Part shown: piece after piece, positions 18,874 to 59,778 of the stretch
How positions within the stretch are numbered: the stretch's first letter is position 1
How the letters are laid out: each line of letters begins with the position of its first letter
Source: Takakia lepidozioides
Taxonomy: Eukaryota > Plantae > Bryophyta
Reading direction: 5' to 3'
Length of the DNA stretch: 64,000 bases
NCBI GenBank assembly: GCA_030704615.1
Contig: CM060731.1
Span: 83,824,001-83,888,000, forward strand
Made by a program: the position numbers and the translations under genes
Notes under the pieces: model-generated
What the model saw: only the letters and a program-made list of their open reading frames with translations
Database searches by the model: none
Told to the model about the DNA's origin: nothing

Positions 18874-20760
18874 TTAAATCGAAGTACTGGAGTTGACCTC
18901 AACAATATGTCCTTGATCTGGAACTCGCTCGCACGACTCGTTTTTTGACTGACGATTAGCCTCCTCCAAATTAGCGCGTGCCTTCACTGCTTCGGCGGCA
19001 GTAATTCTCCTAGTGCTATTCCTTGTCGTATTTTTTCGTGGAGGCATTGTCCACACAACATTGTTCACGTGGATCCATTGAGAAGGATCTGACGAGTTAT
19101 ACTCCCAAAGTTTTGACAGTCCTTGTACCTTTCCAAGTCTGTTGGGTTACCACCTTTTCTCGGTCTCCACCACTTCACCTTCACCTTCTTAAAATTAGGA
19201 TCCTCCCTTTCGCGGATCATGTCAAATATTGCCACCCCCATCCAGACCGGGCACGTACTTGGGTCATAAGGGCGAACGAGCACAAAAAAAACCTTTCTCA
19301 ATATCCTTGAACGGATTCAGGGATATTCTTGGTCGCTCACATCTCGGGCCACAGTAAGGTTCTAGGATTTCATCCTCTTCTTCCACATCTGGCAATATAT
19401 GTGGATGGATTCCATCTCTGTGATGATTCTTGGACCAATTTGTTTTCGGCCAGAATCCCTCAAGAAGCTGAATACGGTCGGGAGCTTCTGGAATTGGCTT
19501 ATCCAGCTCGGCGAGAATGTTTCCCCAGTACTGGTCGTATTGTTCCATTCAACCTTTGTAATGATCGTCAAGCATCATTCATTTCGTCCAAAAATCCCTG
19601 TATTTTTTTATTCCATTCTTAATGAATGACTGTTTTTCGGAGGAGTCGTCCCCGACTTCCCAGATAGGTCTCCTTGGAATGGCGTCTGGGTCTCCTTCAG
19701 GGAGCTTTGGAGTCCCGTCAGGATTGGACTTCCACATCTTCACGCTATTGTTTGTTGGAAGCCAATCCGAATCAGTAGCGGACTTCTTGTACTTCATGAC
19801 GGGCCAGCCCTCCGCATTCTTAAAAAAACGGAAGACGTGCATCTCCGAAATCCCGACCAACGTCTCCTTTCCATCCAGAATATAGCCCTTGACAAAATTC
19901 TTGAAGTCGGGAACCTCCTGAATAATCTGTGGAATGAACTGCAGATCTTGCGAGGTCATAAAAGACCTCATCAAATCCGAAAGAATGTAGGTGCTTCGTT
20001 CCTTCAGCTTCTTCGAAAGGTAGCTGAAGAACCCGTCGATGTCCTCATGGGTGTGTCCGACCATTAGGAACCCTAGCTGGATTTCTTCAAAAACATCTTT
20101 GGTGGTCAGGAGGGATAGAAAAGCAAGCATCCATCTGTTCTTATTGTCCTTCGCAGAGTTGTCCATTTGCAAGTACAGTCTTCTCGGAAGTAGACGAGCA
20201 CCACGTTTGTCTTCCGGCCTGCAGGGTTTAAGAGCATCCAAACATCTCGATTTACCTCTTAAAGTGATTCGAAGAACTCGTTTTGAAGTCGGTAATCGAA
20301 AATGTTCCTGGACTCACGACAGGTTGGCTTCTCCAGCTGGCGCAGGCAACGTGCCAAAGAACCAATTGTAAAGTTTGAATTTTCCTTCCAGAACTCAAGA
20401 GAATACTGACTGTAAGCTCCATCACCATGTCCGTGCGTGACCATTCCCGTTAGTGAAACTGGAAGCTGACCCAAACCAGAAATCATTTTATTTGGAGTCT
20501 GTAGCCTTCCTCCAGCTATGGTACAGTCTTCTGCACAACTCTTGGTGCCTCAAATGTTTATCAAGCGCTCGTTTGTGTGTCATCTGTTCCGCACTTCTCT
20601 TGACAGACTTTCTGATCAGGTCCTTGAACATCTCACACTCCATGCACTTCGCAAATGTACTCCTAGTTTTACGAACCTCCACGTTAGGAAAAATCCGACT
20701 CCGGATGCGGCTAACAGCCGACTGCGAGACTCCTTCCAACCCGAAAAGTCTGTTGGTCTG
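18874..20760 (-). pseudogene. Sola-like / DUF7869-type DDE transposase, frameshifted
   Basis: FAKCMECEMFK...HLRHQ; LYLQMDNSAKDNKNRWMLAFL...FLMVGHTHEDIDGFFS; several consecutive minus-strand frames. The C-terminal part reads VWMG...VKVKWWRP. Confidence 0.75.
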
Positions 20761-22433
20761 TTACAATAAGGTAGGGTCAGGAAAGGAACTTCCACTGGAC
20801 AGTGGAGGTTCATAGGAGTGCACTCTTTGACCGATTTTCGGAAAAGAGTGTCATTTACTGGTAGATCCCTATGTAACAATTATGATGCCAGAAAGATAAC
20901 GGCCGATAACGGTGGTTCAATGGTCTCGCACTCGTGCTTATAAAGCAGTATGTATTTCGCATTCAATGTTGTCCAAGTGGATGATGGCCTGACGCCGATG
21001 ACAAGTGCAGCTATGACACTCGGCCGAGAATGCGGCAAGCGTAAATGAGTGACAGAGGAAATATTCCAAGCCTTAATCCGCCGAATGTAGACATGGTCAG
21101 GAGCAATTATTCCTAGCGGCAAAACGCCGCAAGAGGATCTGACTTGTACATTTCATTTATCGTCACGTGGGGGGTGTGGGAAATATCCCACGGGGTTATA
21201 ATTGATGATCATGTGCAAGGGATCATTAACGTCATATTTTCTCGTTCATTCATCTGTTTTTTCATTTCATCTAGTCATTCGTAAAATGGATGGATAGAAT
21301 GGAAAGGATGAATTGGATGATATTTGCATGGATGTTGGATGGAACACGCGCGACCGTTCGATTTCGAAAGGACGCGATGGTTCAGATCCTTTGCGACGGC
21401 ACCATATAAGGGGTGTGGTCGTTCAGCCCACCCTTTCGCCACTCCATTGTGTACGCGGAAGCGCTGCGGAAGTGGTAAGACCGAGTAGCGCTAGAAAAGA
21501 GAGAGTTTTGAAGAGCGGAGAGCGTGAAGAGCAGAGACTGTGTTGTGCATGGTGCCGTAAGAGCTGAGAGAAGAGAGCGTGCAGTTCAGTGCAGTGGAGG
21601 AAAGGAAGCAGACAGCGGATTCAAGTGCAGACAGGAGACGAGAAGGAAACAGAGCGTAAGGGAGAGCGGAGCGGAGCGGTGGAAGCTTAAGGGTCAAGCA
21701 TTTCACGTCAGCAACAGGGGCACCGAAATGGCTCACGCATCTAGCAGATAATGTTCTCGTTTATGCATGTGGTTTGATGTCATTCTCTCTTGCTCGCTTG
21801 TCATTCTCTTATTCTCTCTTTGTTCTGTTTGTTGATTTGCTTTTCTTTTTCAGCATCGCCCACGTCGCTGTTGGTTTGCTTCTCTTCCTCACTTGCTTTC
21901 GTTCCAGAGGTTATAGAGCACCATTTGATTCTTGCATGTCATGTTTCGTGAATGTGTTGTCTTGTCCGATGTGGAGCATCTCTTTTCAATTCATGTGGTT
22001 TCAAAGCTGTTTCAATTAGTTTGAATTGATTAAAGCTGTTTAGGTGTTTCAATGCATTGCTGCTTCTCTGCTGGTGGTTTGTATGGTGGTTGGTATGGGT
22101 GGTTTGTGGTCCTGGTTTACTGGTGCTGCTGGATTATTAGGGTTATGGATTAGGGTTATGGCGGGTTAGGAGCATGGTTTTTAGCGATTGTTTTTCCGAA
22201 TTTCCGATATTTGATAACGGGTTTTTCTTCGGGGCTAGGCAACTCTAGTAGACTAGTCTCCGTAGACCACTAGACCTCTAATAGACCTCCATAAACTCCG
22301 ACAGGACAAACCACACGAACCTCGCCTGCCCAGTGGAGGTTCCTGCGTGTTACTATGCCAAGGCACAACATAAGGATGTATTGAGATAGACTTATGTAGG
22401 TTCCTCCCCTGCGTTGATTTTTTGTTCTGTCAG

Positions 22434-23013
22434 TATAAAAAGAACGGGCGTAGGAGTGCACACGGTGGCCAAAGATGGTTCTGAGACCGTCGTCGACATC
22501 TGTAAGAGGCCAAGGAGACAGAATCGAGTAAGCATCAACGAAGCAGAAAACCAGGACGAATCACTGGTTGTATCAAAAACAAAAACCTTCAAGAAGAGAT
22601 CTGAGAATCAAATATCAGATGTGGGCTCTGACGTGCGAACCTTCATAAATCCGGGCACTGACAAATCAATGTTCGAGGGAGTTATTTGACGGGAGACAAC
22701 GGAGGAAACAAAGGAAGAGAAAGATGAAAGTGATGACTGTAATCTTCACTCTGATTCATATAATGACATTTCTGTAGGAGATAGTGAACAGTACCCGGGA
22801 TCCGTCCTTCCATCCTCTCCAGGATACAGTCCTCACTCTCCTCAGTATGCAGTCCTTGTAAATTCTCCAGAATATGTCCCCGCTGATTCTCCAGAATATG
22901 TCCCTGCAGATTCTCCTCAGTACGTCCCTGGAGATTCTCCAGAATACATCTCTGGAGATTCTACGACATATACACCTAGAGAGTACTCCCCTGAAACCTT
23001 GAGGATGATTTGA
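22434..23013 (+). pseudogene. Acidic protein or exon ending in SPxYxP tandem repeats (Pol II CTD-like); one in-frame stop
   Basis: The frame of ORF 22414-22689 continues past the TGA at 22687 to SSPGYSPHSPQY...NSPEYVPADSPEYVPADSPQYVPGDSPEYISGDSTTYTPREYSP, encoded by a 24-bp repeat unit. Confidence 0.55.
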
Positions 23014-23287
23014 GAGAGCCTCCTGTAGTTATTGTAGATACAAGAAAATGAAAAGATGAAACTCATCTTACAAAAGAATATCGATTTATTGTAGAAATTA
23101 TATATTCGTTATAGGAACAATTTTGAGACCGCATGATGTATGGAATGTCGAGACGAGCCTTCTCTGCATAAATGTATTATTCTTCTTATAAGTGAAATCG
23201 TTTTCTCCTCCTGAATTGAACTCTTTTATCTGTCAGCTATGAGCGTATGAATTGTTGAACCTCCACTGGACAGTGGAGGTTACTGTC

Positions 23288-23815
23288 ATGGGAATCTTGT
23301 ATGGTTGTCATGATATGTGTCTGAGGACCGAGGTGGTTTGTTCTGTGGACAGCAACATTACCCCGAGGGATTGTATTGTTGGAATGTGCAAACCTATCTG
23401 TGGTTCATTTGTTTATCGAAAATCTCCGAATTTCAAGAATGATCACCTGGCAATTTTTGAGCTGAACCCGGAGATCACAGAATGGGGCATTGTACCCGTT
23501 GGCACACCTCCGGACCATAAGTTCCGGTTCCAATACAAGATTGGTGCAGAGGTTGCCGAGCTCAAATATGCAGATGTGGTCGACGTAGAGCTGGAGATGG
23601 ATGTGGAATTTCCGATGTTGGTAATGTTTATGATGGAAGATGGTAGATTTCCCAGAACGTTTGGCTTCAAACTGGAGGTACGAATTCTAAGGAAGGCCAT
23701 GATGAGAGAGTCCATTCGGGCGGGGTTCACATATTGCGACGATAGTACTCAATTTACAGATGAAGGTTTTTGCATGGCTTGGGGTATTTTTTTGGATGTG
23801 CTTTACTTAAAAGTA
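23288..23815 (+). CDS. Unknown ~175-aa globular protein or domain upstream of the ParB-like exon
   Basis: Long open frame within ORF 23252-23968 with protein-like composition. No family recognised. Confidence 0.35.
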
Positions 23816-23819
23816 AGGA

Positions 23820-26800
23820 GATTGCAAAGACGCGGGAGGAGGAGGTTGCAAGAGCGAAGCCAAAGAAGGGAAAATGGAAATCCATTAACGCCGGTGGTGA
23901 TGACAATGAAGCCGGTACATCAGGGGGAAAGAAGAAACAAAAGGAGGAGATGGATCCTGCTTTCATGACAGATATCAAGAAACCCAAGGCTGCAGACACA
24001 TTCGACAAAGACAAGTGTGAGAAGATGCTGGAGAGGCTGGAGCAAGATTACAAGGACATGTTTCCTTTTGGGTTTGAGGCGACCCAGGACGTCAAAGTTT
24101 CCATGATGGAGCTTGCTCCCAGAGATATGGTGTACAGGCCCCTAAATGTGAAGCACAAAGACGAAGTCAAAACGCGTCTTTACCAGCTCCGGGTGTTTGA
24201 CTCCAAACATCCAGTTTATTTGATTATTGCAAACCCCGAGAAGCCTATGGAGATTTCTAGTTCGAAACCTCGAAACTGGAAGGAGGTGGAAAATTCCAGA
24301 TTCTTCGTCATCGGTGGACAACACACGATCATTGCTGCCAAGGTAAATTTCCCGACAAAATCCAATTTTTGTAACAACATGAACCTCCACTGGACAGTGG
24401 AGGTTCATGAACTTTAAACAACATGCTTGTTAGGTCGATATCATTTCTGATCTTATTCAATTTTGTCGCAGGAACTTGTGCAAGACGTAGACGACGACAA
24501 TCTTAAGAAGTACTACACTGACTGGCCCGCAAAGATTATATGGTCAAAGGATCTGATGAGGCTCGTGAAGCTATCTAAGCTCCTAAACGACCCGAATAAG
24601 GCGCAGAGATTTGACACAACATTTCCCGAGAAAGTTGCACATGCCTGAAATTTCTTCGAGCTGAGGGGGAGGCCGAAAAAGTACAACGATCACACAACGA
24701 AGTCGGAGACTAGACAATGGAAGGTAAATGATTCATTGTGTTTTCCGTTCCTTTTGCTAGAGAACCAAAATATTCTCAAGCTTGGATTTAATGTGATGAA
24801 CGGAGACCGCATTACGAAGCAGGAGACAGTACAAAAATAGCTTCATAAGGGAGGGTGCTACAATGAACGAGCGAGATGGTTCAACATTCGGAAATTCGAC
24901 ATGATGGGGTCTTTTGTAATGTGTCTTGTTTGGTAATGAGGTGCTTGTCCAGTTCTTATTTTCCCAATCTATTTATGTTCTCCACCTGTAACAGTTCCGC
25001 AAATGTGCCGCAAAAATACTTGAAACATCATATGATCATGAAAACGTGATGGTGCGGAGAACGCTTCCAAAACTTTTCATGCTCATTGGGTTTTTCAAGG
25101 ATTTTCTAGGTACACTCTTGGAACTGTTCCTGGTGAAGAACATGAACAGATTGGACAAATTTGACTTGGAGGAGCACCGCATTCCGAAGCAGGAGACACT
25201 ACAGAAATAGCTTCAAATTACAAGGCACAACAAGATGGACGGAGATGAATTCACAATCGAATCATCACTTGGTGTATAGTATAATTGACAAGATAGTTGT
25301 GACTATTGTTTCATCTCAAGATTAATATCAAATATTGAATGAAATTTCTAACTTTGGCCCTGATATTTTTCGTAGGAATTTATGCAAGCATGTCAACTCA
25401 TACTGGAGATGAGTAGCGTGAATGAGGCCATGGTTCTGGTTCTTTGTGGCGAAGACGTATGGAACCTGTGGGAGGAGGTTTTCAAACAGTGGGAACAAGG
25501 AAGCTTATTGATATTTTCGGGATTCAGTGTAAGGGTGAACAGCTACTGCTGAATAAAACCGCTATCGCGACTGCAAGGACTTAATACCAGGCAGTTGAAA
25601 AGAGTGGCGGAGAAAATCCTAAACAGAGACATTTGCATTCGGGGAACGAAATTCAAGGGCGCGGACAAATCCAAAAACACAATGAGCGCGTATATTGACC
25701 AAATGAAATTGCGACGGTTTATTATCGACGATGTAATGGAAGTCTTAGGGTGGCCTCGAAGGAGCAAATAGAACCCGGAACCGTATACCAAACAGGAGTG
25801 GCGTGATGTTAAAAAAAAATACAACTTCAACAAAGCTGAGTTTGAAACATTTTGAGATAGGCTCGGGAACGACTACATTGTTAGCAAACAGAAGATGAAT
25901 ATGGAGACGCAGCCAATGACTGCTGCCTTCAAGAAGTATGTCTTGTCGTGCAAGCAGACCTTCGAGGATAACCAGAATGCCCTGGCGATTCTACGCACGA
26001 GCTTCAGGTCCCATTACACACAGCTGGGGGGAAACCAGAAATTTGCTGATGCCAGATCACGGTTGGGACTTGCACCAAAGAATCGGTTCGACGACATATC
26101 CATGGTGTTCGTCAATACAGTTTGTGATGATGACTCTGTTGTCTTCGAGACAAATGACTACTCAAATATCTTGGATGCTTTTGTGGCTCGGCAACTCATG
26201 TCTAGTGCTTTTGTGTTTTTCTCCACACAAGAATCATCGGGAAATCTTGTGTCATACATCCGGAATGGCCCTGGATCAAAATCGTTTATTATCCGACAGG
26301 GTTATTACATTCCCGGCGAGTTTGAATCACATTACAAGAGCTGCACGACTATATTCTCCCGGATGGTCCTCTGCCTTGACTACGTATTTCCGGCAACAGC
26401 TGAGGAGATGGTGAATCTGGACGACCACATTCAAACTGTTTTGTTATCGCCGGACCCAATTAATCCCGTTATCCAAGGACCAGATGTAGACCCGACCTCA
26501 CAAGAGATGGAGTGCAAGATTTACAATCATGAGCTGAGGCCGGACACCTATGATTACCTGGTTTTTTTTTTTTGCAGGGACGGGATGTCTTGTGTGAACA
26601 TTTTCGGAGGATTGGCAATGACATACGTTCTGCTTGTAAGCGGATTCTGCATCTTGGAATTGTCTGTGTTTTTAGTTTTCCGGATTTAACTCTCGTATTA
26701 TTGACGTTGTCGAAAAAGCGTGTTTAACCTGTGTCTGATTGTTCCATTTTGTTAACCTCCACTGGGCAGTGGAGGTTCATGTTATTGGAGTTGTGGGTGT

Positions 26801-27554
26801 TTTGGGTGTTTGTTATTCTGTAGATTGGTGTGTTTGGTAGTTGTCTCAAAAGAAAGCCTAACCCTTTCAATCTATCGATGGTTGGTGTTCGTCGGATTTA
26901 TTTTGATATCATTGTTTGGTTTCATTGCAGGAAAGAAATATTTGTGTGCTCGACATAAACTTTGTAACAAAAAAGAAATTTTGTAGAAGCAAGGTGGAGG
27001 CCTATTTTAGGACCCTCCAGATTGACAATCAGACTATCGCAGGAGACGGAGATGACGGTGACTCATTGCAGGATGACGAAGTGGACGAAGATGATGATGA
27101 CGAAGGACACGACAAGGATCTGGACGAGGAAATGGAGGAGAAACAATAAGAGGACGACGAGGAGGAGAAAGATGAATATGAGAACATGGAAATCGTCAAC
27201 GGAGTCCAGGGGCAGATGCGGCTAATGTTGGAAAGGGAAAGAGAGGGCCAGGAAATTTCACGGTTGGATAATCTAGGTAGTACTCCAAATACCCAAGAAC
27301 GCGTTGCGCCACAAGATGTACACAATCTGGACAGCTCTTCCTCCAGTTCCGATAACACCACGAATAAGAATCCGGCTTCTCCAGGCGGACAAGAAGCGAC
27401 ATCGACGGAGTTAGTTGAAACCCTCGGTCAAGGGTTTACACCTGTGGAAGGTGACGAGCCATTCATTATGTCACCGGATCCCGTTAACAATCGTCGTGAG
27501 CTGGTGTCCCAGAATGTCACTCAGGATCTGGTTCTGGATGTAGGTAACGAATGA
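23820..27554 (+). pseudogene. ParB/Srx-like + methyltransferase-like fusion gene (copy C, distant homolog, disrupted)
   Basis: MVYRPLNVKHKDEVK...FFVIGGQHTIIAAK (ParB-like); later HELRPDTYDYLVFFFCRDGMSCVNIFGG...|ERNICVLD (degenerate SAM-binding segment); acidic tail; several in-frame stops. Confidence 0.55.
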
Positions 27555-27799
27555 CAATTAGTGAAAGTTTATTCGTACACACTTTTGAATACAATATGAC
27601 AATATTGTAATTATACATACTTGTGAGTGGAATAATCCGAATGTTATTTCCATATGACAATATTGTAATTATATATAATCCCAATGTTTTTCCCATATCC
27701 GTCTTTCTGGACTTCCGAATAAAACATATTTCCACCCGGATACATATTTCCCTTCGCACACCTTTGTGGACATCCACTAACCGATTTGGATAACTTTTC

Positions 27800-28450
27800 T
27801 TGTAGATCCAAGAATCCAATTCGGAGGAAATGACACACACAAGAAAAGGATCAAAGGACACTCAAACGGTGAAGAGACACGTGGATCTGACAGCGAGGGC
27901 CAGGTCACCTGAGCCGGTTCCGCAAGTGACCTCCATTGTCCAGTCGACGTTGCCATCAAGGGACGCAGGGATTGAGTCGGAGAATCCTCCTACTCGCGGG
28001 GAAGGAGAAGAGACAGAGCACCACAATCGAGTAATCCAACAACAGATCCCAATTCGGGTCAAACATTGGCTTTTTTCTTATTACTCTTATTATTGGTCTT
28101 TCAGTCTAATCTTCGGTACTGCTCAATTCGGTAATTTTGTCAGATCATTTTGGACCACCATAGTCGTCATCCGTGGGATTTTTCATTAATTTCCTGTAGA
28201 TTTGTGAGACGACGTCTGAGGAGATCAAACACACGAGGACTGACTCTATCGACACTGAGACGGTGAAGAGAAGAGTGGATCGAACAATTACTGTCGCTCT
28301 ATATGAGCCGGTCATACAAGTTACCTCCACTGGACAGTCGAGGTTGCCATCTGGCTCCACAGAGAAGGACGATAACGTTGGACGTAGAGATGGGAAAGAG
28401 GAGGAGCAGCCTGCCCAGGGATCTCAGCGGCCCACTCCAAAAACGGTAAT
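27800..28450 (+). repeat. Tandemly duplicated exon-intron unit
   Basis: 27800-28055 and 28195-28445 share an acceptor context and GACACT..ACGGTGAAGAG...GAGCCGGT..CAAGT.ACCTCCA.TG..CAGTCGA.GTTGCCATC. Confidence 0.7.
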
Positions 28451-28629
28451 GATTTCAACTCCATTCTTCCGTTTGTCTACTTTGGGATTGTACTCAAATT
28501 GAAATTAATAATGAACTCTTCTGTTATTCCACAGGACAACATGCATTACCCTCCAGTCGACTATTCCCTTTCTGTCAATCCAAACGATCTGCATTCCCTT
28601 CCTTGGGGACCGAACGGATGCCGGCCATG

Positions 28630-29068
28630 ATACTATGTCCTGGTTCTGGACATTGGTTACCTTTGTGAGGTTTTCCTAAAGGATGGAAAGAAAACACCTC
28701 CTGCCACCTAACCTTGTATCTCCGCAAGACAATTCAAGTTAGCTACGCGAAACGGTCTTGACGAATTCGTTAAGTGGGCCGTCAAAAAGTTTTCCGTTTG
28801 TTTTTTGAACACTGGACTTGAAATGAACGTTGAGACTATCGCCAAGGCCGTGTTCGGGAAGTACTATTCCCAGGTCAGAACTTACAACAGAGAGAATTCC
28901 GTCATGCATAGATCGACATTCAACGAAAAATGGCCCAAAGCTTCCAAAAATCCCATCTACTTTAAACGTCTTTACGACATTTTCGCTTAGGAAGACCCGA
29001 CGGCTAACAAATCCAATACTCTCCTCATCGACACTGTAGACAATATGTACAAGTCCTACTTGAACCTG
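28630..29068 (+). pseudogene. FCP1/NIF-like HAD phosphatase domain, degenerate and truncated
   Basis: YVLVLDIG...RNGLDEFVKWAVKKFSVCF...NVETI...NPIYFKRLYDIF*...SNTLLIDTVDNMYKSYLN. Confidence 0.6.
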
Positions 29069-29082
29069 TTAGGACGTATCAT

Positions 29083-32000: not shown

Positions 32001-32698
32001 CATGATCATTGCAACTTCATACAATAGCCTGTCAGCTTATGGAAACCACTACAGGGTGACTTCAACCAATATTGGCACAAGTACAGTGTCATATGACTCA
32101 AGGGTGTCATCTGTTTTCCACCATGTATCTACAAACAGTGCAGGAGAGGAGGTGGTAGAAAGCCTGCGATATGTGGGTGTCATTAGGGAGATACTGGAAA
32201 TTTGACTATGGGAAGACAAGGCCCATTGTGATGTTGTGTTCGTGGGTTCGGGCAAAGAAGGGGAGCCGCAATCAGCCTGCATCCATGAAGCAGGATGATT
32301 GTGGGTTCACATTGGTGAATTTCTCCCAAATGTTGGCTCCACAAGAGCAGCCGTTCGTGCTGCCATCACAAGTGGAGCAGGTATTTTTCAGCACTTGTGT
32401 TCATGGACCTCGGTGGAATGTGGTCCTTGAGAAAAGCCCCAGATCTTCTCGGGTGGTTTATGATGTGTCAATTAGTAACGATGATCTTTGTAGTGTGGAA
32501 GGCCTCTTAGCCCCTGAATGAGTCGAAGAGACACATGCTGCAGGCCCAAATTTGGGCCAGACAATTGAAGTGACTCCCGAAGTTCTTGCCTCACTATACA
32601 GGGATGTGCGCAACGAGGCACCCATTGTGGTGGAGAATGACAGTACCGATGAGGAAGAAGATGACAGCAAGGACGAGCTGCTTGACGTCGATGTGTAA
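29083..32698 (+). pseudogene. CACTA/EnSpm TnpD transposase (Transposase_21 + DUF4218 + DUF4216), frameshifted
   Basis: PLYEGC...LPKSHYEAK..MGLAYKQIHAC; LALDGVNPY...TWPILLLNYNLPPW...LLIPG; HDFP..G; IDTMHCEKN; LKSHDYHVLMQ; FFDIMTHLLIHLV; RWMYPVER; QPFVLPSQVEQVFF. Confidence 0.95.
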
Positions 32699-41349: not shown

Positions 41350-41975
41350 AAGCCAAATGAGGTCACATTTATTGGTGTTCTCTCTGCATGCAGCCATTTG
41401 GGCCTTGTAGATGAAGGTGGTCATTATTTTCAATCCATGTGTCAAGAGCATGGCATTACACCAACATAAAAGCACTGCACCTGCATGGTTGACCTCCTTG
41501 GCCATGCAGGGCGCTTGGATGAAGAATATTTTATTGCCAACATGGCACTCAAACCAGGTGCTTCAGTGTGGGGGGCCTTGCTTGGTGCCCGCAGAATCTA
41601 TGGAAAAGTGGAGTTAGCAGAGTGTGCTGCAGAATGTATTTTCAAGGTGGAATCACAAGATGGATACATTTGCCATTGGAGATAGATCTCACCCACAAGC
41701 AGAGGAGATCTATGATGCGTTAGAGAGATTGACTTGGCAGATTAAGGAGGCGGGATATGATATGCCTGAGACACGCTTTGTGTTGCGTGATGTGGATCAG
41801 CAGATGAAGGAACAGGCTCTTTACCACCACAGCGAAAAGCTGGCCATAGCTTTTGGGCTCATTAGCACACCCCCTAGGACCCCTATCCGCATCATTAAAA
41901 ACCTATGTATATGTGGGATGCCACACTTACACCAAGTTGATATCCAAAATTGTTGCACGAGAAATTATTGCAATG
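41350..41975 (+). pseudogene. PPR C-terminal E-partial DYW region 2
   Basis: MVDLLGHAG, GDRSHPQAEEIY, HHSEKLAIAFGLISTPPRTPIRIIKNL, CHTYTKLISKIVAREII. Frameshift at CxxC and no terminal DYW. Confidence 0.9.
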
Positions 41976-44583: not shown

Positions 44584-44612
44584 CCTCTCTCTCTCTCTCT
44601 CTCTCTCTCTCT
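44584..44612. repeat. (CT)n microsatellite just upstream of ATG 44634
   Basis: Directly visible. Confidence 0.95.
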
Positions 44613-44633
44613 ACACCATACATACAAACAACC

Positions 44634-45731: not shown

Positions 45732-45763
<32 letters not shown>

Positions 45764-45768
45764 CCCCC
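45562..45768 (+). mobile_element. tRNA-derived SINE with 12-bp target-site duplication
   Basis: A box TAGCCTAGTGGTAAGG (45576), B box GGTTCAAACC (~45619), T-rich tail, and flanking direct repeat GAGCTGTAGACA at 45550-45561 and 45769-45780. Confidence 0.85.
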
Positions 45769-48076: not shown

Positions 48077-48129
48077 AGCCATGGCATTGCGCTTTCCAGG
48101 CTTCAACATCATGACCAACGAGCCTTCTG

Positions 48130-48528: not shown

Positions 48529-49779
48529 CGCCGTTGATCAAAGGAACACAAGAAAACACAGCAGCAGTGAGCATCAAGTAAAAACACAAACATAAACTGG
48601 AACTGGAAGGCGCCGCCATTGCGAAGCCGTCAGTGTACTTCTATCTGGCGTATAGTCAAAGAAGGTGCAGGTAATGATTAACGAAATCTTGCAACCCGTC
48701 TCCACCAAGATTCTCGCACCCCCGGGTTATTCCTCTTCCTCTCCGGGTTTATGCCAAAAAGAGGAATGTTAGCTCGGTAAAGCGTGCATGCGAGGAAGAA
48801 AGATCTCACGATGAGGAGATGAGATCTCACACTAAATCACACTATTTATCCAACGTAGGTACACACGTACATAGGGATAAACACACTCAAAGTACACCGG
48901 GCCGCTTAGGCTTCCAGGTAATTCTTTATATAATCCCAGGAGGCTAATATGCACAGACAGGCTGGTCACTTCTGATAGGCTGAATAGATTATGTCCATAT
49001 GCTCATCCAGATAGGATGCCACGTAGTTGTTATTAGGATAAGCTAGCTGTTAACTCCAGACAGCCTACATTATTAGGCCAGGGGGGATGCCTCGGCGTGA
49101 GCCTGGTCACGTGAGCGCGTGAGCGCAACTGCGCTCACGCCACGTCACCTTGCGCAAATGCCACGTCACGGGGCTCAGTCCACGTCATCACACGTGAAGG
49201 CCGCGTCACCACGCGCCCAGAAAAGTGGAGTGTATTCCCGCGGATTGGCACCCTTTACCGCGGAAACAAGCTGGACGACATAATAAAAGGCATTGAATAA
49301 AGGATGGATGAATGTACAGTTGGATGATAAACAGATGGATGAGTGTGAAAAATGTATGTAGATGGATGAATGACGGATGGATAAGAGTAAAATGGATGAA
49401 TGTATAATGGATGTTGAGCAATGACAAAAATTCATGACAGGAAGATGCATGACCAAATCTTTTGACGAATGCACAACGTATATGAAATGAGTGTGGAAGG
49501 TTTGTGGGGTGGATTAAAGAGTACAGAGGATGAATGTACAATGGATGTTGTACAAAGGAAGCTTTCATGAATGGAGCACGCATGAATACAGTGTAGATGA
49601 ATGCACAATGGATATGAGAAGAGTCAGGAGGTTTGTGAGATGGATTCATACATATAGCAATTTAAACGAAAGTTGATTCTGTGATTATTATTTGTTCTAA
49701 AGGAACAACTACGGTGGAGGAAAGGGATTCAACGTTTTCCAGATAATATGAAAATGAATATTAAAAGAATACAGTTCAG

Positions 49780-52700
49780 TCTGACTCAGAGTCAGTACAA
49801 TGTATCCCCTCTTCCTCTGCATCTAAGTCTAAGTATTTTAGAACACCGGATCCACGCTGGATACACCTACGGCTGGCCACTAAAAAGTCAGGGGATAGGG
49901 ACTCGGCCGCGTGAAGTGCCATTGCTTCGGCATAAACAGGAAGCAGAAAATTGGAAAGGGGGCTGTCGAAAACAGACTCGCCAGAAATGACTGTATCTCC
50001 TGAAGATCCACCGCTGCCTTTCCTGAAAGACAGCCTGAAAAAGTTATTACTGTAACTTTGATGTTATCGAGAAATTGAGTATGACTCCCAAAGAGGGTTT
50101 AGCACTTACTCACATGAAAAGTCGTTGTCGACCTGCTTATCTTCGGGATCGTCATCATTTTGAATTTGAATCCGATCAGTCTGTGTGCCTGAAGTGGAGC
50201 CAGACAAAAGGGGGAGGAGCACGGTGTTGTAGAGGTCAGAATCACCCTCCATGCCAAAAAGGCTTCTTCCGCCTGCCTTGCATGCGTGGTAAGTTGCTCC
50301 TGCACCAGACAGGAGAACATGAACAGTTTGGAGGGGGGATTTAAGCAGATGAAACTGTTGAAAGGAAACCAATTCGGAAGGGAAAAAACGAACCTGTGGA
50401 CACAGAAAGATCGACCACCCGTGCAGAGCGGTGGCTGCATGACTCCAGCAGTATTTGCATGAATGCTGGTGACTTTTCCTTTGCACCTCTCCAGGGAGTG
50501 CCATCTGGTCTCTTCAGAGTCTGACTGGACTGCATGAAGTTGTACAAAATGTCATCGACATGGGGCTCATAGGGGGGGTTGACGAAACAACCCTGGTCAG
50601 AAATCTCAAAGCTGCGGATGGAGGATGGTGTCTTTGATGTGCGAATCCTCCGCAGGCAGATCGCCTCGAACATCCTCGTCTGGCAAAGATAGCAGGTTAG
50701 TGTGGTAAACACAATCTATAGTGGAAGTGTGTACATCGGCTATTCAGAACTCTGACACAAAAAAATCATGAATCGGTGATGATCGGTGTCGATCATAAAA
50801 CATTCTACTAGAGTGGAGCTGCAGAGAAAATTGAAACTCATGATCAAAGCACAAGCAGAAGGGAGACGGCATACCAGCTGACCAGGGAAACCCCTTTCAC
50901 AAGGTAGAGGCTGTTCACACAATTCCATGTGCGCAAAACTTCAAACCCTGAAGACTTGAGGTATGATGCCAATGCCCGACGACTATCATTGTCACATGAC
51001 TGAAAAAGCAGAAGTGTCCCTGCATCAGAGAGGAAATTGTTACAGAACCCGAACACCCAACTCCAGTAGTTGTCCTCGAATTTGTTCCAGCCTGGCGTCT
51101 TGCCCTTTGGAAGAACTTCTGGCACAGCCTGGCCATCCGGGATGTCGAGAATGACAATGTCGGCCGCATAAGTTTTCTGCACACCGCACACGAAGGTGGG
51201 ACCTGTGCTCACCTGCAACAGACATGTTTTTTATAAGAACGATGGCAAGATTGTTTTCAAAGAACGAGACTGAAATACTGCCAACGAAACTTTCAGAGAA
51301 AAAGGAAAGAAACTGGAATTCTCACCAGATTGAGGAATGAGATTATATTGTCCCAGGTAGGGGATGGCACCCCAGTGTATCCTCTCTTTCGACTCTGCAT
51401 CATCGAAAGCCAACCCTCATTAACAATTTTCATCTCTCCTGCTGAATCAGAACGGGAAGGGTGTGGCTTGGCATCGAACACGCACTGAAGAGTGCGGGTA
51501 TATCTTCCAGCAGTAAAGTCCTGCCCACTCTCCATCTCCTTTTCATTCTCCTTCCCCTTGTCCTTTTCCTTCTCTTTGGACTTGTCTTTGTCCTTTGGCT
51601 TTGCTGGTGAGATGGCTATGACATCAACAGCCTTGTCTTTTGGTTTGCGGCCCGCCTTCTTTCCCTTCTGCGGCGTTCCCTGAGCATCAGGCTCCTTGGC
51701 AGCCAATGTTGCTATGTTTCGTTGATACTCTTCGTCAGTCAAAGGCGCCAGCATCTCAGCGTTATTGTTCAAGTATTTCATATGCTGTTCTTGAAAGGTC
51801 GTGTGCTCAGGTGGGCAGTCAAGGTACCACCCACAGTCTCTGAAGTGAGAAGGACTCCAGTCCTTCAATATCCCTGCAGTATACATGGTTGGATCGTTTG
51901 CAGGGTCCGACCACATGTCAAGATAGTCGGGAATTCCGCTCAGGTGATTTCCTTCCATAAGCACATATTTCGTGTACCTGAAAAAAGGAGATAAATCCCA
52001 ACCCACAAAAGCGCTCAGTGAGTAAGATGCAAGTAGAACAGAAAGAATAAAACATAGATTGAAATGGCTCTGAGAACTGCTCCAAGGACCTTTCAGGACC
52101 ACACTACTGCTCCAGATATGAATGTCGTCAACGCCATTCAGAACATTCCATTCAATGACACTGTAAATACACCCTAATCCAGGTGAATGCAAATTATCGT
52201 TTAGAAATGACACAGACATAGAAGTGAATGTCGTCAACGACATTCACTAATGAAGCCAAATTATTACTTAAATGAAGCAAAATCACAGGATGGAAATCAA
52301 AAAATTGAGTAAGGAACCCTCCAGGAAAACTCAATGCACATTCATAACGAACCTATCACTGAGGACCTCACAACATCACTGTATGTGAATGGCGTCAACG
52401 CCATTCACAAAAATACAAAAAAGAAACCAATTACTTAGCTCCCCAATCCATGTAAATTGAATTTGTCGCTGTTGAATAATACAGACACAGCTGTGAATGT
52501 CGTCAACGACATTCACTTTGGATTTCTTAAAACAGAGCTTATCAAGCCTCCACATTCATCGCAAGAGGCAAAAACAATGCAGAACAACTGAATGTCTGCA
52601 TTGACATTCAGCAAAATGAAGTGAGGAACCCTCACTGTAACCTCTATGGACATTACAAAAATTTAAATAACTCTGAGGACCTCTCAACAACTCCGTATGT

Positions 52701-55409
52701 GAATGTCGTCAACGCCATTCAAGGACATTATCAATTCTAATCAGGGACAATATAATTGCACCCTTAGATCCTAACCAGGTGAATTCATATACTCGCTTAA
52801 GAATGACTTAGACAAAGAAGTGAATGTCGTCAACGACATTCAATCTGGATCTAAGATTGCAATCCATATGAAGCCACATTTTTTCCCAAAAAACAGTAGA
52901 GTTTCAAGTATGACATTGCACCTGTACACAACTCGCATCATGGCCCACTCTCCTCCAACCTGACTGTCAAAGTCGTTGGACCGTAAAATGTTACCATCTT
53001 TGGAGAACTCCCGGAAAAAACAGTATCTCCAGGTGAGACCTCTCCACTTCCTTATGTATGCCTCCAATGACATTTGGGGAGGGGAAACAATCGCAATGTT
53101 CAGGTCCTTCAAAGTCTGATCCAGCACAATGACGGCGCGCTTTTCGAGCTGCAAATAGTATATTTGTCAGAATTGCAAAAAAGATACACATCACATACTT
53201 GAAGAGAAGAAACAGCATGTTCGAATACACACCTGACTCCAAAATGTAGCCTTGTGGAGCCAGTTATCAAACACCAAATCACTGATTCCTTCCACCTTTG
53301 TGCCAGGCTGTATGGTGCTCTTTGGGAACTGATTCAAGTCCTTTACTGTTTGATCTGAGTTCCATATCTCCAGCCACCTTATTTTTGTTTGTGGGTCGAC
53401 CATCGATATGGCCAGCCGGTGCAATTTCTCCTGCTGCATCTCCGGATGCACATGCTTGTCATAGTGTGTTTTGATCTGCTGAAGGAACTCAGGACCAAGT
53501 CCAGGATCTACTATTCTAAGCTGCTTTCCGAAGGCTGACATCAATTTGGTTCTTCGCATTTCAAACTCCTTCTTTATTGCAGCTTCCACACCCTTTGATG
53601 TCCTTAGTTCTTCTGGTGTAGTGCGGTAATATTCGGATTTTCCCTTCTCAGCTGCCTCTGCCAGTTCTTGCTGCATTCATTCAAGTAGTGATTAGCTCCG
53701 AGGGGACTACAAACATGTATTCGAAAAGTAAACAGATTACAGACTCGGGCTTACCGCATACATGTACTCCAGAAACGCCTCTCGTGTCAAAGAATACCAA
53801 GTGCCTGCAGCTCTTCCTGTTTCGCACTTCTTGATGATATTGGGTGGTAGTACTGTCCGAAAATCATCCAGCTTCATCAGACCAATCCTCTGAATTCGGA
53901 ATAGTGTGTGAACCAAGCTTGTTGTCACATGCGATTTCTCTGTCGATCTGCAAAAACATTGGAAACATTGCATTCCTTAACACTGTTTTTTGAGGATTAA
54001 CAAGACACTACAGAGGGAATGAAATCTCCTGGATGACTTACTTGTTCACGTCGTGCATAGCTGTAAGAAGCCTAGCGATGTCGTTTCCTGGATCCAAAAC
54101 CATTGCCTCCACAGCAACATGCTTGTCTTTGTCTTTCGAATGGTGTTTCTGAATGTATCCCATCCATGCCAGCAATCGGTGGTTGCCGTCCCAGACGTAG
54201 AACATGTGGTTGCAGAATTGCTGGGTGTTCTTTCCCATCATGAGGCCCAGCTCGAACTCCTCATTGGCATCTTTCCAGCACTCATCCCAGTTATCACTGA
54301 TCTCTGGAGACACTAATGTGCTTTTCCCATTTATATCCGTCAGTGACACATAAAAAACTTGTGCACCAAGTCTATATCCATGCACAAAATCACTCTCCAA
54401 TTTTGTTATGTCATGGGAAAGAGGTGGACGCACAACAGGCATTGATATCATCCGGCACAGAGGTATGTCCAGACGCCCTCCAGATACGAGCATGTCCCTT
54501 ATAACCTCCTGAGAGTTTACCTTCTGGAATGACATGAGTTCTTTCACCTTGTCAAGGTAGTGCACTTCGGATTCATCTGCTTCATCTGTATTCTCTGAGC
54601 TTTTTGCGGACTCGTCCCCATCTCCAGATCCTTTCCCCTCTGATCCTGTAGGCTTCGACCTCACAGTTTTCTGCACGATGCCATTCAGTTCTGACTGAGT
54701 GATTTGCAAATAGTGAATGGCGATAACGACCATCACTCTCTATCAAGGAAATTCACCATGAATGGTGTGAAAGAATTCAGCACAATCTACACATGCAAAG
54801 CTGAGACTGCCGTATTCAAAACAAAAGCGAGAGCGATAGCGAACGGCGTTAACGACAATCACAAAAGATAACGACCTGCCGGATCGGTGTTGTGTAATGA
54901 CATACATGTGCAACTGATTGGCGGCAACGACATTCAGTGTAGTTTAGGGAGAATAGTAAGTGCAGACTCTCTCTTCAAACACATAGGTACATAAATCTCA
55001 TGAGGAGAATCGAATGGCGTTAACGACGCTCGCAATTCAGTAGTTCCTGCTAAAGAAGGGAAGATGAAGGACTCCTTGAAAGGCAATCAGACAGACTATA
55101 TGATAAAACTTACTGGCACCTTCTTAGGTTTTGAAATTTGATCCCCTTCAGCAGCTTTCCTCTTCCCTCTCACATCTGCTGGAGTTTCTGTCTGCGCAAG
55201 GGTTTCTTGACCTTCTCCAGGTTCGGCGTTCCGCGTGCTTCAACCTTCTTCAGTGTCCTGCGAATCATCTCTGCCTCCACAGGCTGGCGCACTCTTATCA
55301 CCGACTGTGTCGCAGCCGCTGCCTCAGTCTCCGTCTGCTCTTGTGAATCAGTCTCCGCGTTCACCTGCTGCCTTGGCCCTGTGTTCTCCAACAAACGACG
55401 CCTCGTCAT
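49780..55409 (-). CDS. Multi-exon ParB/Srx-like + N6/N4-methyltransferase-like fusion protein (copy B)
   Basis: IPLCRMISMPVVR...FYVWDGNHRLLAW (54038-54736); EKLHRL; MRVVYR; KYVLME..GWYLD; ADIVILDIPDG; KEKSPAFMQILLESCS..RVVDLSVSTG|ATYHACKAGGRSLFGMEGD. Collinear with copy A and sharing its intron positions. Confidence 0.75.
52119..55032. repeat. Intronic 22-bp palindrome B (TGAATGTCGT-CA-ACGACATTCA), ~11 copies
   Basis: Copies at 52119, 52225, 52386, 52494, 52589, 52700 and 52821 (one intron), and degenerate copies at 54714, 54841, 54915 and 55011 (first intron). Confidence 0.92.
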
Positions 55410-56265
55410 TTTCTCTCTTGCTCTGCGTCTCTCTCTAAGGGAAGTAAAATAAAGAGACTTTCTTGCTCTTTCGTATTCTAGAAGGAACCCTCTCCAGCTT
55501 GACTACCACTCTCCCTCTAAGCGCGAAAAGTAGAAAAACGCAGTGACTCCCGATTTCTTGCGGGATTGCCTGCGTTCTTGCGTGTCTCTAGAAGCATCGG
55601 ATTCCCTCCCGCGTGACCGTTACACATAGTCGTTTCCTTATTAGTGCACATGCCAGCAATTGGTGTACAGCTGTTCGTATTCAGTTATGGATGTCTGACG
55701 TGTGCCGCCCAAAAAAAACGGCGTGTTCTTTATTAGAACGGGTTCAATATTTAAAAATAACAGCGAATCCCAGAAATTGATGCGCAGTCTTAAACAAATA
55801 AATATAAATGAACGAGAGTTTGATGACAAATTTTGGAATATCATACACGGTCATCCTTGTTAGCCAAACCCCACATTCGTTTCACATTTGGAACTTTCCA
55901 GGTGCGCATGATCATTTAGTAGTAGTATATAGATACATTTACTTAATCTGCAATCCCATTCTCAGATCCTGTGGCATGCTTCCAGGAAGTCGGCTTTGTT
56001 ATTGGGTTTATTGATGAGGTTCTGATTAACGGTTTAACAGTTGCCGACACTGCCCCTAGGGATACTCTGACCACTGGGCCCACAAGAAAAGTAATTAAAA
56101 TGGACGGCTGCATATCTGGAAAGAATAACATAATATGCACAGTCGTTATCTGAGCTTCCTCCGCCATATTCTCTGCTCATTCTTCAACTGTGTTCTGGAG
56201 ACAGCAGTAAACCGATTTACACTAGATCTGCGATAGCAAGGTACAAACATACTCGAGGAAGGAAG

Positions 56266-59200
56266 ATGGCTTCCTCTGAAGCGGAGTTCTTCTCAGACGA
56301 CAAACCAGTGCCGTTCTCCCAGGAAGTCCTTGACAATGGATTTGCAATTGTTCTGGAACATGTCTTGGCTACCCGTTTTCAGCTGCAGAATGGCTCCATC
56401 TTTTTGGAGAAAGAGGTTTACGATCTGAAAGGGAAGTTGGTGAAATATTCTTTCCAAAACCGTGATGAGACGGCTCATATCAGCCAGTGGAGAGTGCGTC
56501 CTGGTCGATACAGAGTACTTGGAGAGCCTCGGCGAAAGTCCCTTGGGTCATATGTGACGCCCGGGACTGCTGCTTCGGTCGTTGAAGACAAGAGGGAGGT
56601 GGTGGTGAAAAAAGAACAGACTTCCTCCACTCCAATCGTTGAGCTTTCGGATTCTTCCGATGATGACATAAGTGAAATTCCAAATCCAGTCCTTCCTACT
56701 GTGGTTGGAGAAGCTGATGAAGAAGAGATTTGTAGTGTCATTCCAAAATTGCGGGCGATGGGAGGAATGGCTGGATTCAAAAGTGAGTTGCGGGGAATTA
56801 TTGGGAATCTTTGAAGCAGGTGCCTGTGAAGTTCTTGCCGGAGACTTTTGATGGCGATATCCTATTCGAGCTGCCTCCTCCTCCGCGAGTTGGAGGTGTA
56901 ACAATCATGATGCATGGAATGGACAAGAAACACGACGGGCACCCGTGGTGCAGAACAAAAACATCCAATATTCAGAATGATGACAAGCTTGTTTTCAGGA
57001 GGACAGTTTGCAATGGACACCTTAGGTGTGATAATTTGAATTGCAGACACTTTCTTCAGTCTGGGGTTCATAATCAAAGCGAATGGGAGGGTCTGGCGGA
57101 AAATCCATTTCAGCCTGGGACTGCCCCTCCACCGGCAAACACTTTCGTCTGCAAATTCTGCAAACTTGTGCCATCCTGTTTGGCGCTCTGCGGAGCAAGA
57201 ATGTACTATGTTGTCCACCGTTTGAATACAATGACGAGAGCTTGTGTGCATTTTGGATTCCATAACCATCCTGTCTCGAAGGGGGATTACAGGGAGAGTG
57301 TTGAGACAGTATCGAGGTTGATCAAACAGGAGTTCGGGAGAAACCCATCCGCAACAACATCTGCAATTGCTCTTGGCGCAAGCAAGTCCTTCTTGGAAAG
57401 CCATATTTTGAGTGAAGGAGATTCTGTGGGGACTAAACTTGACGGTGCAGCATTGGACCTGGTCATGGATCATTTCTCCACTTTAAGTTCACCTAACATT
57501 CGGCATCAGATCAATGCATTGAGAATGGGCTCTGGATCAGAGGCTACATAGACAATATTTTGGAATTGAAACGAGTGAGCAAGTACGATTACATCCAGGA
57601 CAATGTATTCCCAGGTCAAGGTGCCATCAAAGTTTTTCTTTTCAAAATGTCGACTGTTGGGGAGGGCAGTGGGTTAGCCTCGTGAAGCGGATGCAGAAGA
57701 CTGGGGACTTGCAGAACTGTTTTCTTATGTTTGATCATGTGAAACGAGTGAAGGATTGGACGACAATGGCTTGTCATGTCTACGATCCAGTGTACCAACG
57801 AGTTATGACAATTGCAGTTTGTGACATGCAATCCGAGGATACGGAATCCCAGAAGCTCATGTGGAATTCCCTGATACGTGTCATGGGCTGCCATGGGCTG
57901 CCATCTCCAAATTTCGCAGGTTTTATGGCGGATAGTGCTCAAGCAAATTTCAATGCTATTCGTGTTGTCTTCGGATCGGGCGACCCAAAAGTGCCTATGC
58001 CAGGAGAGAGAGCGTATATGTCTATTCCATTGGACACAATCTCTGGAAAAACATACAAAGTCGGACATCAAACCAGAGATGCAGACTCAGCACCGTAAAT
58101 TGTGCAAAGAGTACAAAGATGCTAGAACAATGAAGGAGGCGGACACTTTGTTCCAGACAATTCGTGCCTGGTGGTTCTCTTCTGGAGCTGCATCACTTGA
58201 GAGTATGAGAGCATTGGAAGATTGGCTGGCGTTTTGGCACTTCCGGTATAGACAGTGGGGAGCAGCCATGACAATGGTACGAGGCTTCTATTTCATGCTT
58301 TATTCATACATTTGCTTTCCATATTTTTGACTCATTGCTTTCTTTATGTTGTTTCCTGTGCACTGTTCTGAAGTGTGGTTATCCTCTTTGCAGAACATGT
58401 CCATTGAGGAAATGGCGGACATGCCATCTTGCAATTTGGCAGAAACTGTGCACAATGCATGGTTGCAGCAGTCTGGGAAACGAGGTCGGGATTTGTATGT
58501 GGCAACAACAAATGATTTGATACGTGCCTTGCAACAACAAACCCGATACCGTGATTTCTTACGAGGTGGGGTTGGTGGCAAGGGTCCGGACAAATGGGAG
58601 TTGATGTTGCGTGCTGCAAACAGATCTGGGGATCCAATCAAGATAGCACGGGCGGTGAGCATGTATGCCAGGGAACGCCACTTGTTTCTAGAGTTCCACA
58701 TCTTGAAGGGGAGGAGAGATTCGGCTCCTGTAAGAGGAAATTGAACACTCCACCTGGTTCGGATTCAGATTCCCACAGGGCAGACCGTGATAACTTCTTG
58801 AAGCCTCGTGTTCCCCTGCATGACAGCTCCATGTCCGGAACCTCCATTGTGGAGGAACCTCCAACACGACGGCAAGCTCCAGCATCAAACCGTGCCACTG
58901 AAATGGTGCAGGAGAGAAACAACCCCCTTGATGTGCTTGAGTCCGCATGCCCCGACCACGTTTGGCACATAGAACGCACAAGTGTCGGGTCTCGTGTGAA
59001 ATGTACAGCGATCAGGGCAACTAATTTCGAGAAGTGCACTTCATCTATATCCAGAGGTGGTGCCCGAACTCTTGCTCCGACTTTCACGGGCTTGATGCGT
59101 CCATACGGTCAACCAGAAGCCAAGAACCACAAGTTCTGGTTCTGCGCAGATGATTGTGTCAGATGTGTGCATGGAACTGTGCGTCCTTCCGTAGTGATGA

Positions 59201-59778
59201 AGCCATCTCCTCCAACCGTTTGGCCCGTGAAGGTGGGAACACATCTCAGCTTTCAGGAGATTGAAATGCTGGAGGAGGCAGGTTTTTCCCTTGCGAGACA
59301 ACCCCAACTCCATGCATGTGCTACTACTTCTGCGTTCTCCCGGGTCCCCCCGGCAAATCCTGACTTGTGGCCAACCAAACGAGATGGAAAGCTCGTTCGG
59401 CGTTTCCCTCCAACCGCTGAACACTTTGGCAAAGTGGAGTCCGCAAGAATGCTCCAAGCTCGTGTCGGAAGCACCACGGAAGTACCCGATCCAGGATATG
59501 GTCGGGTATTCACAATCATCACTTCCACATCTGCTGTTCATGACAGGACCTACGACATCACGGTTTCCAATTTCCCCAATTGCACATGTCCTGATTTTGT
59601 GAATATGCTATCAACCAGTTTGGGCAAGAGAGGTAAATTCATACCCTGCAAACATTTGTATTTCATATTTTTGAGGAGGATGGTTTGCGATCCCAAACGT
59701 GACAACTTCATTCACCAGGCCACTATGAGTTTCAACGAGGTCGATACTCTTTTGCAGCGGGATACAACACATGGGTAG
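56266..59778 (+). pseudogene. MULE-type transposase with GCM-like N-terminal Zn domain and C-terminal SWIM finger; several frameshifts
   Basis: HDGHPW...CNGHLRCDNLNC...CKFC...HFGFHNHP (GCM/WRKY-like); FLMFDHVKR...GFMADSAQA...CLFHW (MULE D..D..CxxH); NLAETVHN (E); CTCPDF...CKH (SWIM). Confidence 0.8.

Follow-up and report, generated by a model that had tools for sequence, protein, structure and literature searches.

We analysed a 64-kb stretch of Takakia lepidozioides DNA (contig CM060731.1; hereafter the window), in which three multi-exon genes for proteins with a ParB-like domain, here called A, B and C, lie among genes for transposases of several kinds. The DNA is eukaryotic and its open reading frames are split; the sequence searches were run exon by exon. 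From left to right the window contains gene A (839-5209, plus strand), the Pfam-recognised gene of a DUF7869 transposase (18877-20760, minus strand), gene C (approximately 23243-29110, plus strand), a CACTA (En/Spm-type) transposase (29380-32518, plus strand; Transposase_21 with E 8e-68 and DUF4218 with E 5.5e-37), a satellite whose repeat period is close to 300 bp (36979-44008), gene B (50109-54739, minus strand) and a Mutator-like transposase (56266-59778, plus strand), which was delimited by tblastn with the public contig L001 and by motifs read by eye. We refer to genes A and B as Mutator-type cargo and to gene C as DUF7869-type cargo.

Genes A and B are homologous: BLAST aligned them in eight colinear blocks with amino-acid identities of 27-42%. 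Both genes have their GT-AG splice sites at identical codon positions and in identical phases (e.g., ..DLNS followed by gtaag in A and ..DVNK followed by gtaag in B after exon 1; cag followed by (R)YMKYVL in A and by (R)YTKYVL in B). Since both the positions and the phases of donors and acceptors are conserved, A and B are members of a real spliced gene family. In gene A, on the plus strand, we distinguished a ParB-like exon (1661-2095, with the motif DGNHR at 1943), helical exons (2205-3014), a long exon with the motif DIPDG at about 4290 (3428-4540), an exon containing a motif X/I-like stretch with GTG at its end (4643-4910) and a C-terminal exon (~5012-5203). Gene B, on the minus strand, has the ParB-like exon at 54472-54044 (DGNHR at 54190), further exons at 53952-53749, 53676-53230 and 51985-~51300, the DIPDG exon at 51191-50871, the exon at 50685-50392, whose motif X/I-like stretch has STG at its end, and a last exon at 50300-50142. 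It is open in every block homologous to A.

The first conserved exon of both genes contains the sequence FVWDGNHRLLAW, which includes DGNHR and is invariant across the four sequences of alignment A2; in the window, the pattern DGxHR occurs in A and B only. The later exons contain ILDIPDG followed by a hydrophobic strand and, approximately 200 residues further on, the pattern (R/K)SPAF(I/M)Q..(M/L)E(T/S)C.....VLDL/VVDL...(G/S)TG. This order of motifs resembles that of motifs IV, X and I in beta-class amino-methyltransferases such as YhdJ of E. coli, local alignments with which were not significant. The place of motif IV reads DIPD instead of the catalytic DPPY, and the place of motif I reads ICGTG or SVSTG (alignments A5 and A6). 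An NPPY at 50580 was considered as the catalytic motif of B and rejected: it does not stand at the place of motif IV, and A has CDPLDY there. A third copy of the A/B type at 23-27 kb was likewise rejected, as BLAST, the DGxHR pattern and searches with hidden Markov models (HMMs) found none. A word-index protein search with the A exon matched only two proteins, and the A/B profile found nothing in viral or prokaryote contigs.

The transposase at 56266-59778 on the plus strand diverges head-to-head from gene B, and together they make up what we call element B. Its motifs, read by eye and without a statistic, are an N-terminal Cys/His finger within a putative zinc-finger DNA-binding region (56787-57548), the series D..D..CxxH..E in a catalytic region (57523-58741) and a C-terminal SWIM domain (59550-59680; Pfam E 0.005 and 16.7 bits, the cut-off being 19.6), all on the plus strand. 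The B-type adjacency is repeated outside the Takakia window by L001, an independent public metagenome contig. There a ParB-type frame on the plus strand (P0002), 43% identical to A, is placed head-to-head with two long transposase frames on the minus strand, which match 56.3-59.8 kb of the window at 38-62% identity (tblastn, five blocks). The corresponding blocks of the window switch frame at least twice (near 57524-57580 and 57987-58001) where L001 runs continuously, and the B transposase is therefore a dead copy. In the Mutator type, the cargo (43-49% identity) and the transposase (38-62%) have diverged to a comparable degree, which fits a long linkage of the two. Mutator-like transposases have an N-terminal zinc finger of the WRKY/GCM type, a DDE domain with CxxH behind the second D and a C-terminal SWIM, and their elements have long terminal inverted repeats and target-site duplications of 8-10 bp. 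For element B, a 47-nt inverted repeat with 81% identity (49094-49140 / 60317-60358) suggests tentative outer limits at 49094-60358; no matching target-site duplication was found at these candidate ends (49094/60358).

The second head-to-head pair consists of the DUF7869 transposase (Pfam PF25273, E 4.8e-39), on the minus strand, and gene C, which diverges from it on the plus strand. The transposase gene is composed of pieces at 20760-20491, 20313-19582 (catalytic), 19548-19267, 19316-19068 and 19146-18877. When metagenomes were scanned with its exon, only three short contigs (L008-L010) were revealed as relatives. As to the copy number of the element, low-coverage runs of the same organism yielded many short contigs 90-99% identical to 23000-28990, so the C-type element is present in multiple copies in the Takakia genome. 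These contigs showed no splice joints.

Gene C, on the plus strand, comprises an N-terminal piece (23243-23965), a ParB/Srx-like exon with the signature GGQHT (23986-24348), helical pieces (24451-24645 and 25376-25549), a putative methyltransferase-like exon (25856-26686) with NTVCDDD at the place of motif IV and FGGLAMT at that of motif I, an acidic region (26907-27551) and a NIF-like end (28712-29110; NIF with E 0.014 at 28712-28987). A candidate first coding exon, which we propose tentatively, lies at 22690-23010 on the same strand, between the palindromes at 22318 and 23258 described below. It should be mentioned that this segment consists of tandem 24-nt repeats encoding serine-proline-rich repeats of eight residues (SPEYVPAD), which are reminiscent of the tail of RNA polymerase II.

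With the exon 23986-24348 (..FFVIGGQHTIIAAK) we found 25 relatives among 1.8 billion representative proteins. The AlphaFold model of this exon, for which the alignment of these relatives was used, had a predicted local distance difference test score (pLDDT) of 74. In the Foldseek search with this model all hits at ranks 1-30 were ParB/Srx proteins (sulfiredoxin, KorB, Noc, ParB, SbnI and PadC), and VIA-align gave Z values of 5.3-6.6 with the cytidine triphosphate (CTP)-binding N-domains of ParB, Noc and KorB over 74-86 residues (root-mean-square deviation 2.6-3.7). With moderate confidence, the modelled C-type domain can be assigned the ParB/Srx fold. Its signature GGQHT, with the family consensus GQH, does not contain the arginine, whereas A and B have DGNHR. 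Word-index protein searches with two C exons were blank.

The domain order of the C type, with a ParB-like part followed by a methylase-like part and a NIF-like end of the type found in phosphatases of the RNA polymerase II carboxy-terminal domain (CTD), is the same in the public contig L011, which has three consecutive frames: the ParB-like P0023, a frame of 578 residues and NIF (Pfam E 1.3e-7). Residues 225-490 of the middle frame resembled methyltransferase clusters, including PF01555, by language-model features (0.91-0.95), and no Pfam match of this frame to PF01555 was obtained at E up to 1. At the place of motif IV, alignment A4 shows NTVC in C, DTTS in L011 and DPPP in L013, another contig of the C type, and at the place of motif I it shows FGGLA / YSGGYA. 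The order, motif IV before motif I, is kept in both the A/B and the C types. Used as the query of a language-model search, the methylase-like exon of the window itself gave nothing informative.

Each of the elements has its own palindrome of 22-24 nt; the three are mutually exclusive, and 0 matches are expected by chance. The C-type palindrome, AACCTCCACTGGACAGTGGAGGTT (24 nt), is located at 18771, 20787, 22318, 23258, 24382, 26754 and 28322, thus spanning 18771-28345. It gave 11 strand-matches in this region against 0 expected and none elsewhere in the 64 kb, including the CACTA part. It sits just past the stop of the DUF7869 gene, just upstream of the first coding piece of this gene and, within gene C, behind several of the exons. 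That these two genes form one element is best supported by this palindrome, which brackets both of them and stops before the CACTA sequence. The A-type palindrome, GGAAATGCGGCGCCGCATTTCC, forms an array upstream of gene A (1-230, sites 31, 84, 137 and 201) that has a spacing of about 53 bp and continues off the left edge of the window; single copies lie in the introns of gene A (2125, 3333 and ~4590), and a second array (5898-6692, sites 5919-6681) and one further site (7795) follow downstream of the gene. Palindromes are placed in a similar way in the intergenic region of element B, and the minus-strand transposase that the original prediction expects to the left of position 1 is plausible. 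The B-type palindrome, TGAATGTCGTCAACGACATTCA, is present as six sites within an intron of gene B (52119-52842), and degenerate copies are found between gene B and the transposase (54713-55034, including a site at 54915).

Private palindromes were also observed beyond the window. The C-type relative L013 has its own 26-nt palindrome, ATCCATTGGGCAATTGCCCAATGGAT, at 1563-1595, 2057-2086, 5304-5338 and 5454-5483, with sites both before and after its ParB-like gene.

According to the original prediction, the same ParB-methyltransferase cassette is paired head-to-head with transposases of two different superfamilies, B with a GCM-MULE-SWIM transposase and C with a Sola/DUF7869-like one, and is a portable module exchanged between unrelated transposons. 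The two divergent layouts are real, with strands as predicted, and the stops of the two transposases fit the end coordinates given there (18874 and 59778); private palindromes accompany both layouts, and the layout of B recurs in L001. The transposases are indeed of different kinds, no sequence similarity between them being detectable, and Pfam identifies that of C as DUF7869, although the MULE label depends on motifs and a SWIM match with E 0.005, and the Sola label was not returned by any tool. The identity of the cassettes did not survive. When all pieces of A and B were compared with the window by BLAST, nothing was matched at 20-29 kb, and in HMM cross-searches of one family with the other neither A/B nor C detected its counterpart, so that no sequence similarity between the B and C cargo genes was revealed by either method. 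The C type moreover differs from A/B in its NIF-like domain and its N-terminal region.

The only link between the two cargo lineages came from hhalign. The profiles of the C-type and A/B-type ParB-like domains aligned with a score of 23.5 over 85 columns, GQH being in register with GNH, while 200 column shuffles of the profiles gave a mean of 12.9, a standard deviation of 2.5 and a maximum of 22.4. By this comparison, the two domains appear to be related only remotely, as members of one superfamily, and it is through this alignment that the A/B domain is tied, as a probable remote relative, to the ParB/Srx fold. Since the link consists of hhalign with its shuffle control, no exchange of the same module is supported. 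As judged from sequence, the cargo genes are two very old lineages, at best related, each of them apparently long tied to its own transposase.

Taken together, the window probably holds decayed copies of two large cut-and-paste families, each with a ParB-like cargo gene and a private palindrome that have long been linked, rather than a recently moved cassette. Several results weigh against this reading or parts of it. In the Foldseek search with the C-type ParB-like model the E-values were 0.16 or worse, and the best Z of 6.6 is middling. No piece of gene C matched the Pfam models of ParB or of methyltransferases at E up to 1, nor did any piece of A or B, and the name ParB-methyltransferase for A/B is therefore a motif reading. 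Comparison of the A, B and C pieces with PDB sequences, using exons and profiles, gave blank or chance matches, and tblastn against phage records was blank. For the methylase-like region of L011, the AlphaFold model built from three sequences had a pLDDT of 35, and hhalign of the methylase-like exons of the C type with those of the A/B type was not significant. For these reasons the methyltransferase-like label of C, based on a motif reading and one language-model match, is a lead, not a result. The MULE/Transposase_mut profile of Pfam matched neither the window pieces nor the intact frames of L001, and since even these are missed, the transposase of element B can be called Mutator-like from its architecture as read by eye, not from a tool match.

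The same applies to element C, where "Sola-like" describes architecture and motifs and likewise is not a tool match. In the literature searched, we found no paper linking DUF7869 or PF25273 to Sola, and in 2017 there was no Pfam model for Sola (PMC5751038). Around element C no terminal repeats were found when 16-19 kb was compared with 28-36 kb, the right side being broken by the CACTA sequence. Sola elements have terminal inverted repeats and a 4-bp target-site duplication. The persistence of the adjacencies in other copies, too, was confirmed only in part: the B-type pair recurs in L001, but in L003 (the same sequence as L004), the only informative long public contig of the C type, DUF7869 is absent within 10 kb upstream. 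The other public C-type contigs were too short to show an upstream transposase.

Alternatively, each type of transposon could have captured a ParB-methylase fusion separately, for instance from bacteria, phages or giant viruses, and the likeness of the cargo genes would then reflect the design of the donors and convergence. We regard such independent capture as possible but rather unlikely. The extreme divergence between the cargo lineages agrees with it, and fusions of the ParB N-domain with PF01555 are common in prokaryotic mobile DNA. In addition, the accessory proteins of algal transposons vary in their second domain, which may be a methylase, a SET domain or a 2-oxoglutarate (2OG) oxygenase (10.1101/2025.02.11.637652). 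However, no prokaryotic or viral relative of either lineage was found in searches that reach only close relatives, and both lineages have in common such unusual features as the loss of DPPY, splicing and intronic palindromes.

It is very unlikely that one cassette was recently swapped between Mutator-like and Sola-like transposons, as a portable module would require. The domain order, the head-to-head layout and the presence of palindromes are indeed common to both pairs, the weak profile similarity joins the ParB-like domains, and accessory genes of red algae are reported to move among transposon families (10.1101/2025.02.11.637652). These similarities amount to a shared general design. The divergence of the cargo genes themselves speaks against an exchange of this kind: neither BLAST nor HMM searches connect C with A/B, a NIF-like domain is added and the N-terminal region is another one in the C type, and in the Mutator type the cargo has diverged to a degree similar to that of its transposase.

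The surroundings of gene C contain further CACTA sequences. In a single frame on the plus strand (28991-29662), the NIF motif (NTLLIDTVDN) and the conserved N-terminus of the CACTA transposase stand about 130 residues apart, connected by an acidic low-complexity linker. The end of gene C is thus cut off, because the open frame of the NIF match continues into CACTA sequence. A second NIF-like fragment (13704-14093, plus strand) shares 43% identity with the NIF frame of L011 and, in the order seen at the end of gene C, precedes a CACTA N-terminal fragment (15106-15980, plus strand). In L003 (15382-19367, minus strand) and L004 (8620-12605, minus strand), a CACTA transposase about 50% identical to that of the window is located 5-9 kb downstream of the C-type ParB-like exon, on the opposite strand. 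We rejected the idea that the two CACTA fragments of the window are a single gene which element C has divided, as they overlap in homologous positions. The two NIF-CACTA pairs, which are diverged and differently spaced, may be a coincidence or may point to a third transposase partner.

That gene C belongs to the right-hand CACTA element or is a neighbouring insertion, the DUF7869 layout being chance nesting, is highly improbable: NIF-like sequence is twice followed by same-strand CACTA sequence (13704-14093 and 15106-15980; 28712-29110 and 29380-32518), one frame spans both at 28991-29662 and the C-type ParB exon of L003/L004 lies near CACTA and not within 10 kb of DUF7869, but the C palindrome flanks and lies within the DUF7869 gene and gene C and is missing from CACTA, the spacing of the NIF-CACTA pairs is not the same and there is hardly any likeness between them outside the domains, the CACTA of L003 is on the opposite strand, and L011 has the ParB, methylase-like and NIF frames without CACTA.

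If the window does hold two long-linked families, the following mechanism can be hypothesized. The cargo gene is spliced and would be transcribed away from the transposase, its product consisting of a ParB/Srx-fold domain and a region laid out like a beta-class N4/N6 DNA methyltransferase without DPPY, and the palindrome is scattered through the intergenic region and the introns. By analogy with ParB on parS, we infer that the ParB-like domain would bind the palindromes of its own element. Such binding could tether the remaining parts of the protein to the DNA of the element and so permit transcription despite silencing by the host, or mark this DNA as self for transposition. The tethering model, which we favour, has its analogues in ParB-parS and in the anti-silencing protein of VANDAL elements. 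DPPY is missing from all copies, which speaks against methylation by the methylase-like part; as far as motifs can tell, a role in binding or as a scaffold is more likely for it than enzymatic activity. Beyond the ParB fold and the element-specific palindromes, the mechanism is what we infer. A broader version appears doubtful to us: the ParB-like domain with a private palindrome could be a general self-recognition kit, long kept in at least two superfamilies (Mutator-like, DUF7869/Sola-like and, in view of the repeated NIF-CACTA adjacency, possibly CACTA elements), and in the C type the mimic of the RNA polymerase II tail and the CTD-phosphatase-like domain would steer the transcription machinery of the host to the DNA of the element, which would be a new type of counter-silencing.

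The closest known system is Sola1-1_Ec32 of the brown alga Ectocarpus, in which a 1104-aa accessory protein with a ParB-like domain and an N4C/N6A methyltransferase domain is encoded on the strand opposite to the transposase (Dinatale et al., 2025; PMC12477816). Its authors proposed a class of accessory proteins whose target for binding and modification is the transposon that encodes them (PMC12477816). The comparison was made by description. As in Sola1-1_Ec32, there is a single accessory gene opposite the transposase in Takakia, and the ParB-like domain precedes the methyltransferase(-like) one; unlike it, the Takakia copies are from a land plant, have neither a Pfam-detectable methylase nor DPPY, and in the C type possess an additional NIF-like end.

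In red algae, Plavaka elements carry PAG2, an N6-adenine methylase with a SET domain, and PAG3, a ParB-like protein with a 2OG oxygenase (Petroll et al., 2025; 10.1101/2025.02.11.637652). Accessory genes accompany Plavaka, Mutator, Zisupton and Fanzor elements there and are stated to be highly mobile among families, and the ParB-like gene has adjacent arrays of tandem inverted repeats (10.1101/2025.02.11.637652). The Takakia proteins resemble PAG3 in being ParB-like accessory proteins with inverted repeats nearby. They differ from PAG2 and PAG3, which are two genes with other partner domains, in that both parts are encoded by one spliced gene and the palindromes are intronic as well. As with the algal accessory genes, the Takakia cargo genes belong to a DNA transposon, are oriented opposite to its transposase and have inverted repeats nearby.

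VANC of the Arabidopsis VANDAL elements, which are Mutator-like, recognises motifs of its own family and counteracts silencing (as cited in 10.1101/2025.02.11.637652). The likeness of element B to VANDAL lies in a Mutator-type element with an accessory gene, and own-motif recognition and anti-silencing are what we propose, by analogy, for the Takakia proteins. VANC is not known to have a ParB or a methylase-like fold. As regards the bacterial ParB-parS system and the ParB/Srx superfamily, the resemblance consists in the fold of the C type, the DGNHR of A/B and the palindromes of 22-24 nt, while the C type differs from bacterial ParB in GGQH(T/S) without the arginine; a helix-turn-helix DNA-binding domain was not recognised, and the genes of the window are eukaryotic and spliced.

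The general idea behind the original prediction had thus already been published for algae, since accessory genes of this kind were described by Dinatale et al. and Petroll et al. What is new here is the land-plant setting, the presence of both domains in one spliced gene, the degenerate catalytic motif and the NIF-like end of the C type; we found no paper on any of these four points in the literature searched.

Other features of the window are mentioned for completeness. The satellite at 36979-44008 has a strong skew of G over C, with related pieces at 35271-35879, and is flanked by a PPR-repeat-like open frame (weak Pfam match) that has sequence in common with the repeat units. Immediately to the left of element C, the segment 16000-18200 is AT-rich (36% GC), has a strong GC skew and contains tandem repeats of about 400 bp. 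Downstream of gene A there is an inverted pair of open frames (6941-7639, minus strand; 8002-8625, plus strand) with 46% protein identity and no Pfam family, which encloses the single A-type palindrome at 7795. A proline-rich open frame of 328 residues (10942-11925, plus strand) showed a weak match to the plant En/Spm domain Transposase_24 (E 0.0016).

To our knowledge, few transposons encode proteins that recognise their own DNA, the anti-silencing protein of VANDAL being the classic case, and ParB-type accessory genes with cognate palindromes have been known only since 2025, in brown and red algae, where none has been tested. The hopping of one cassette between superfamilies is not shown by the Takakia data. 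What these data would add is an extension of the phenomenon to land plants, in the form of two deeply diverged versions in one genome, associated with different transposases. This suggests that the design is old and has been repeatedly retained, and it makes matched pairs of protein and site available for a direct binding test.

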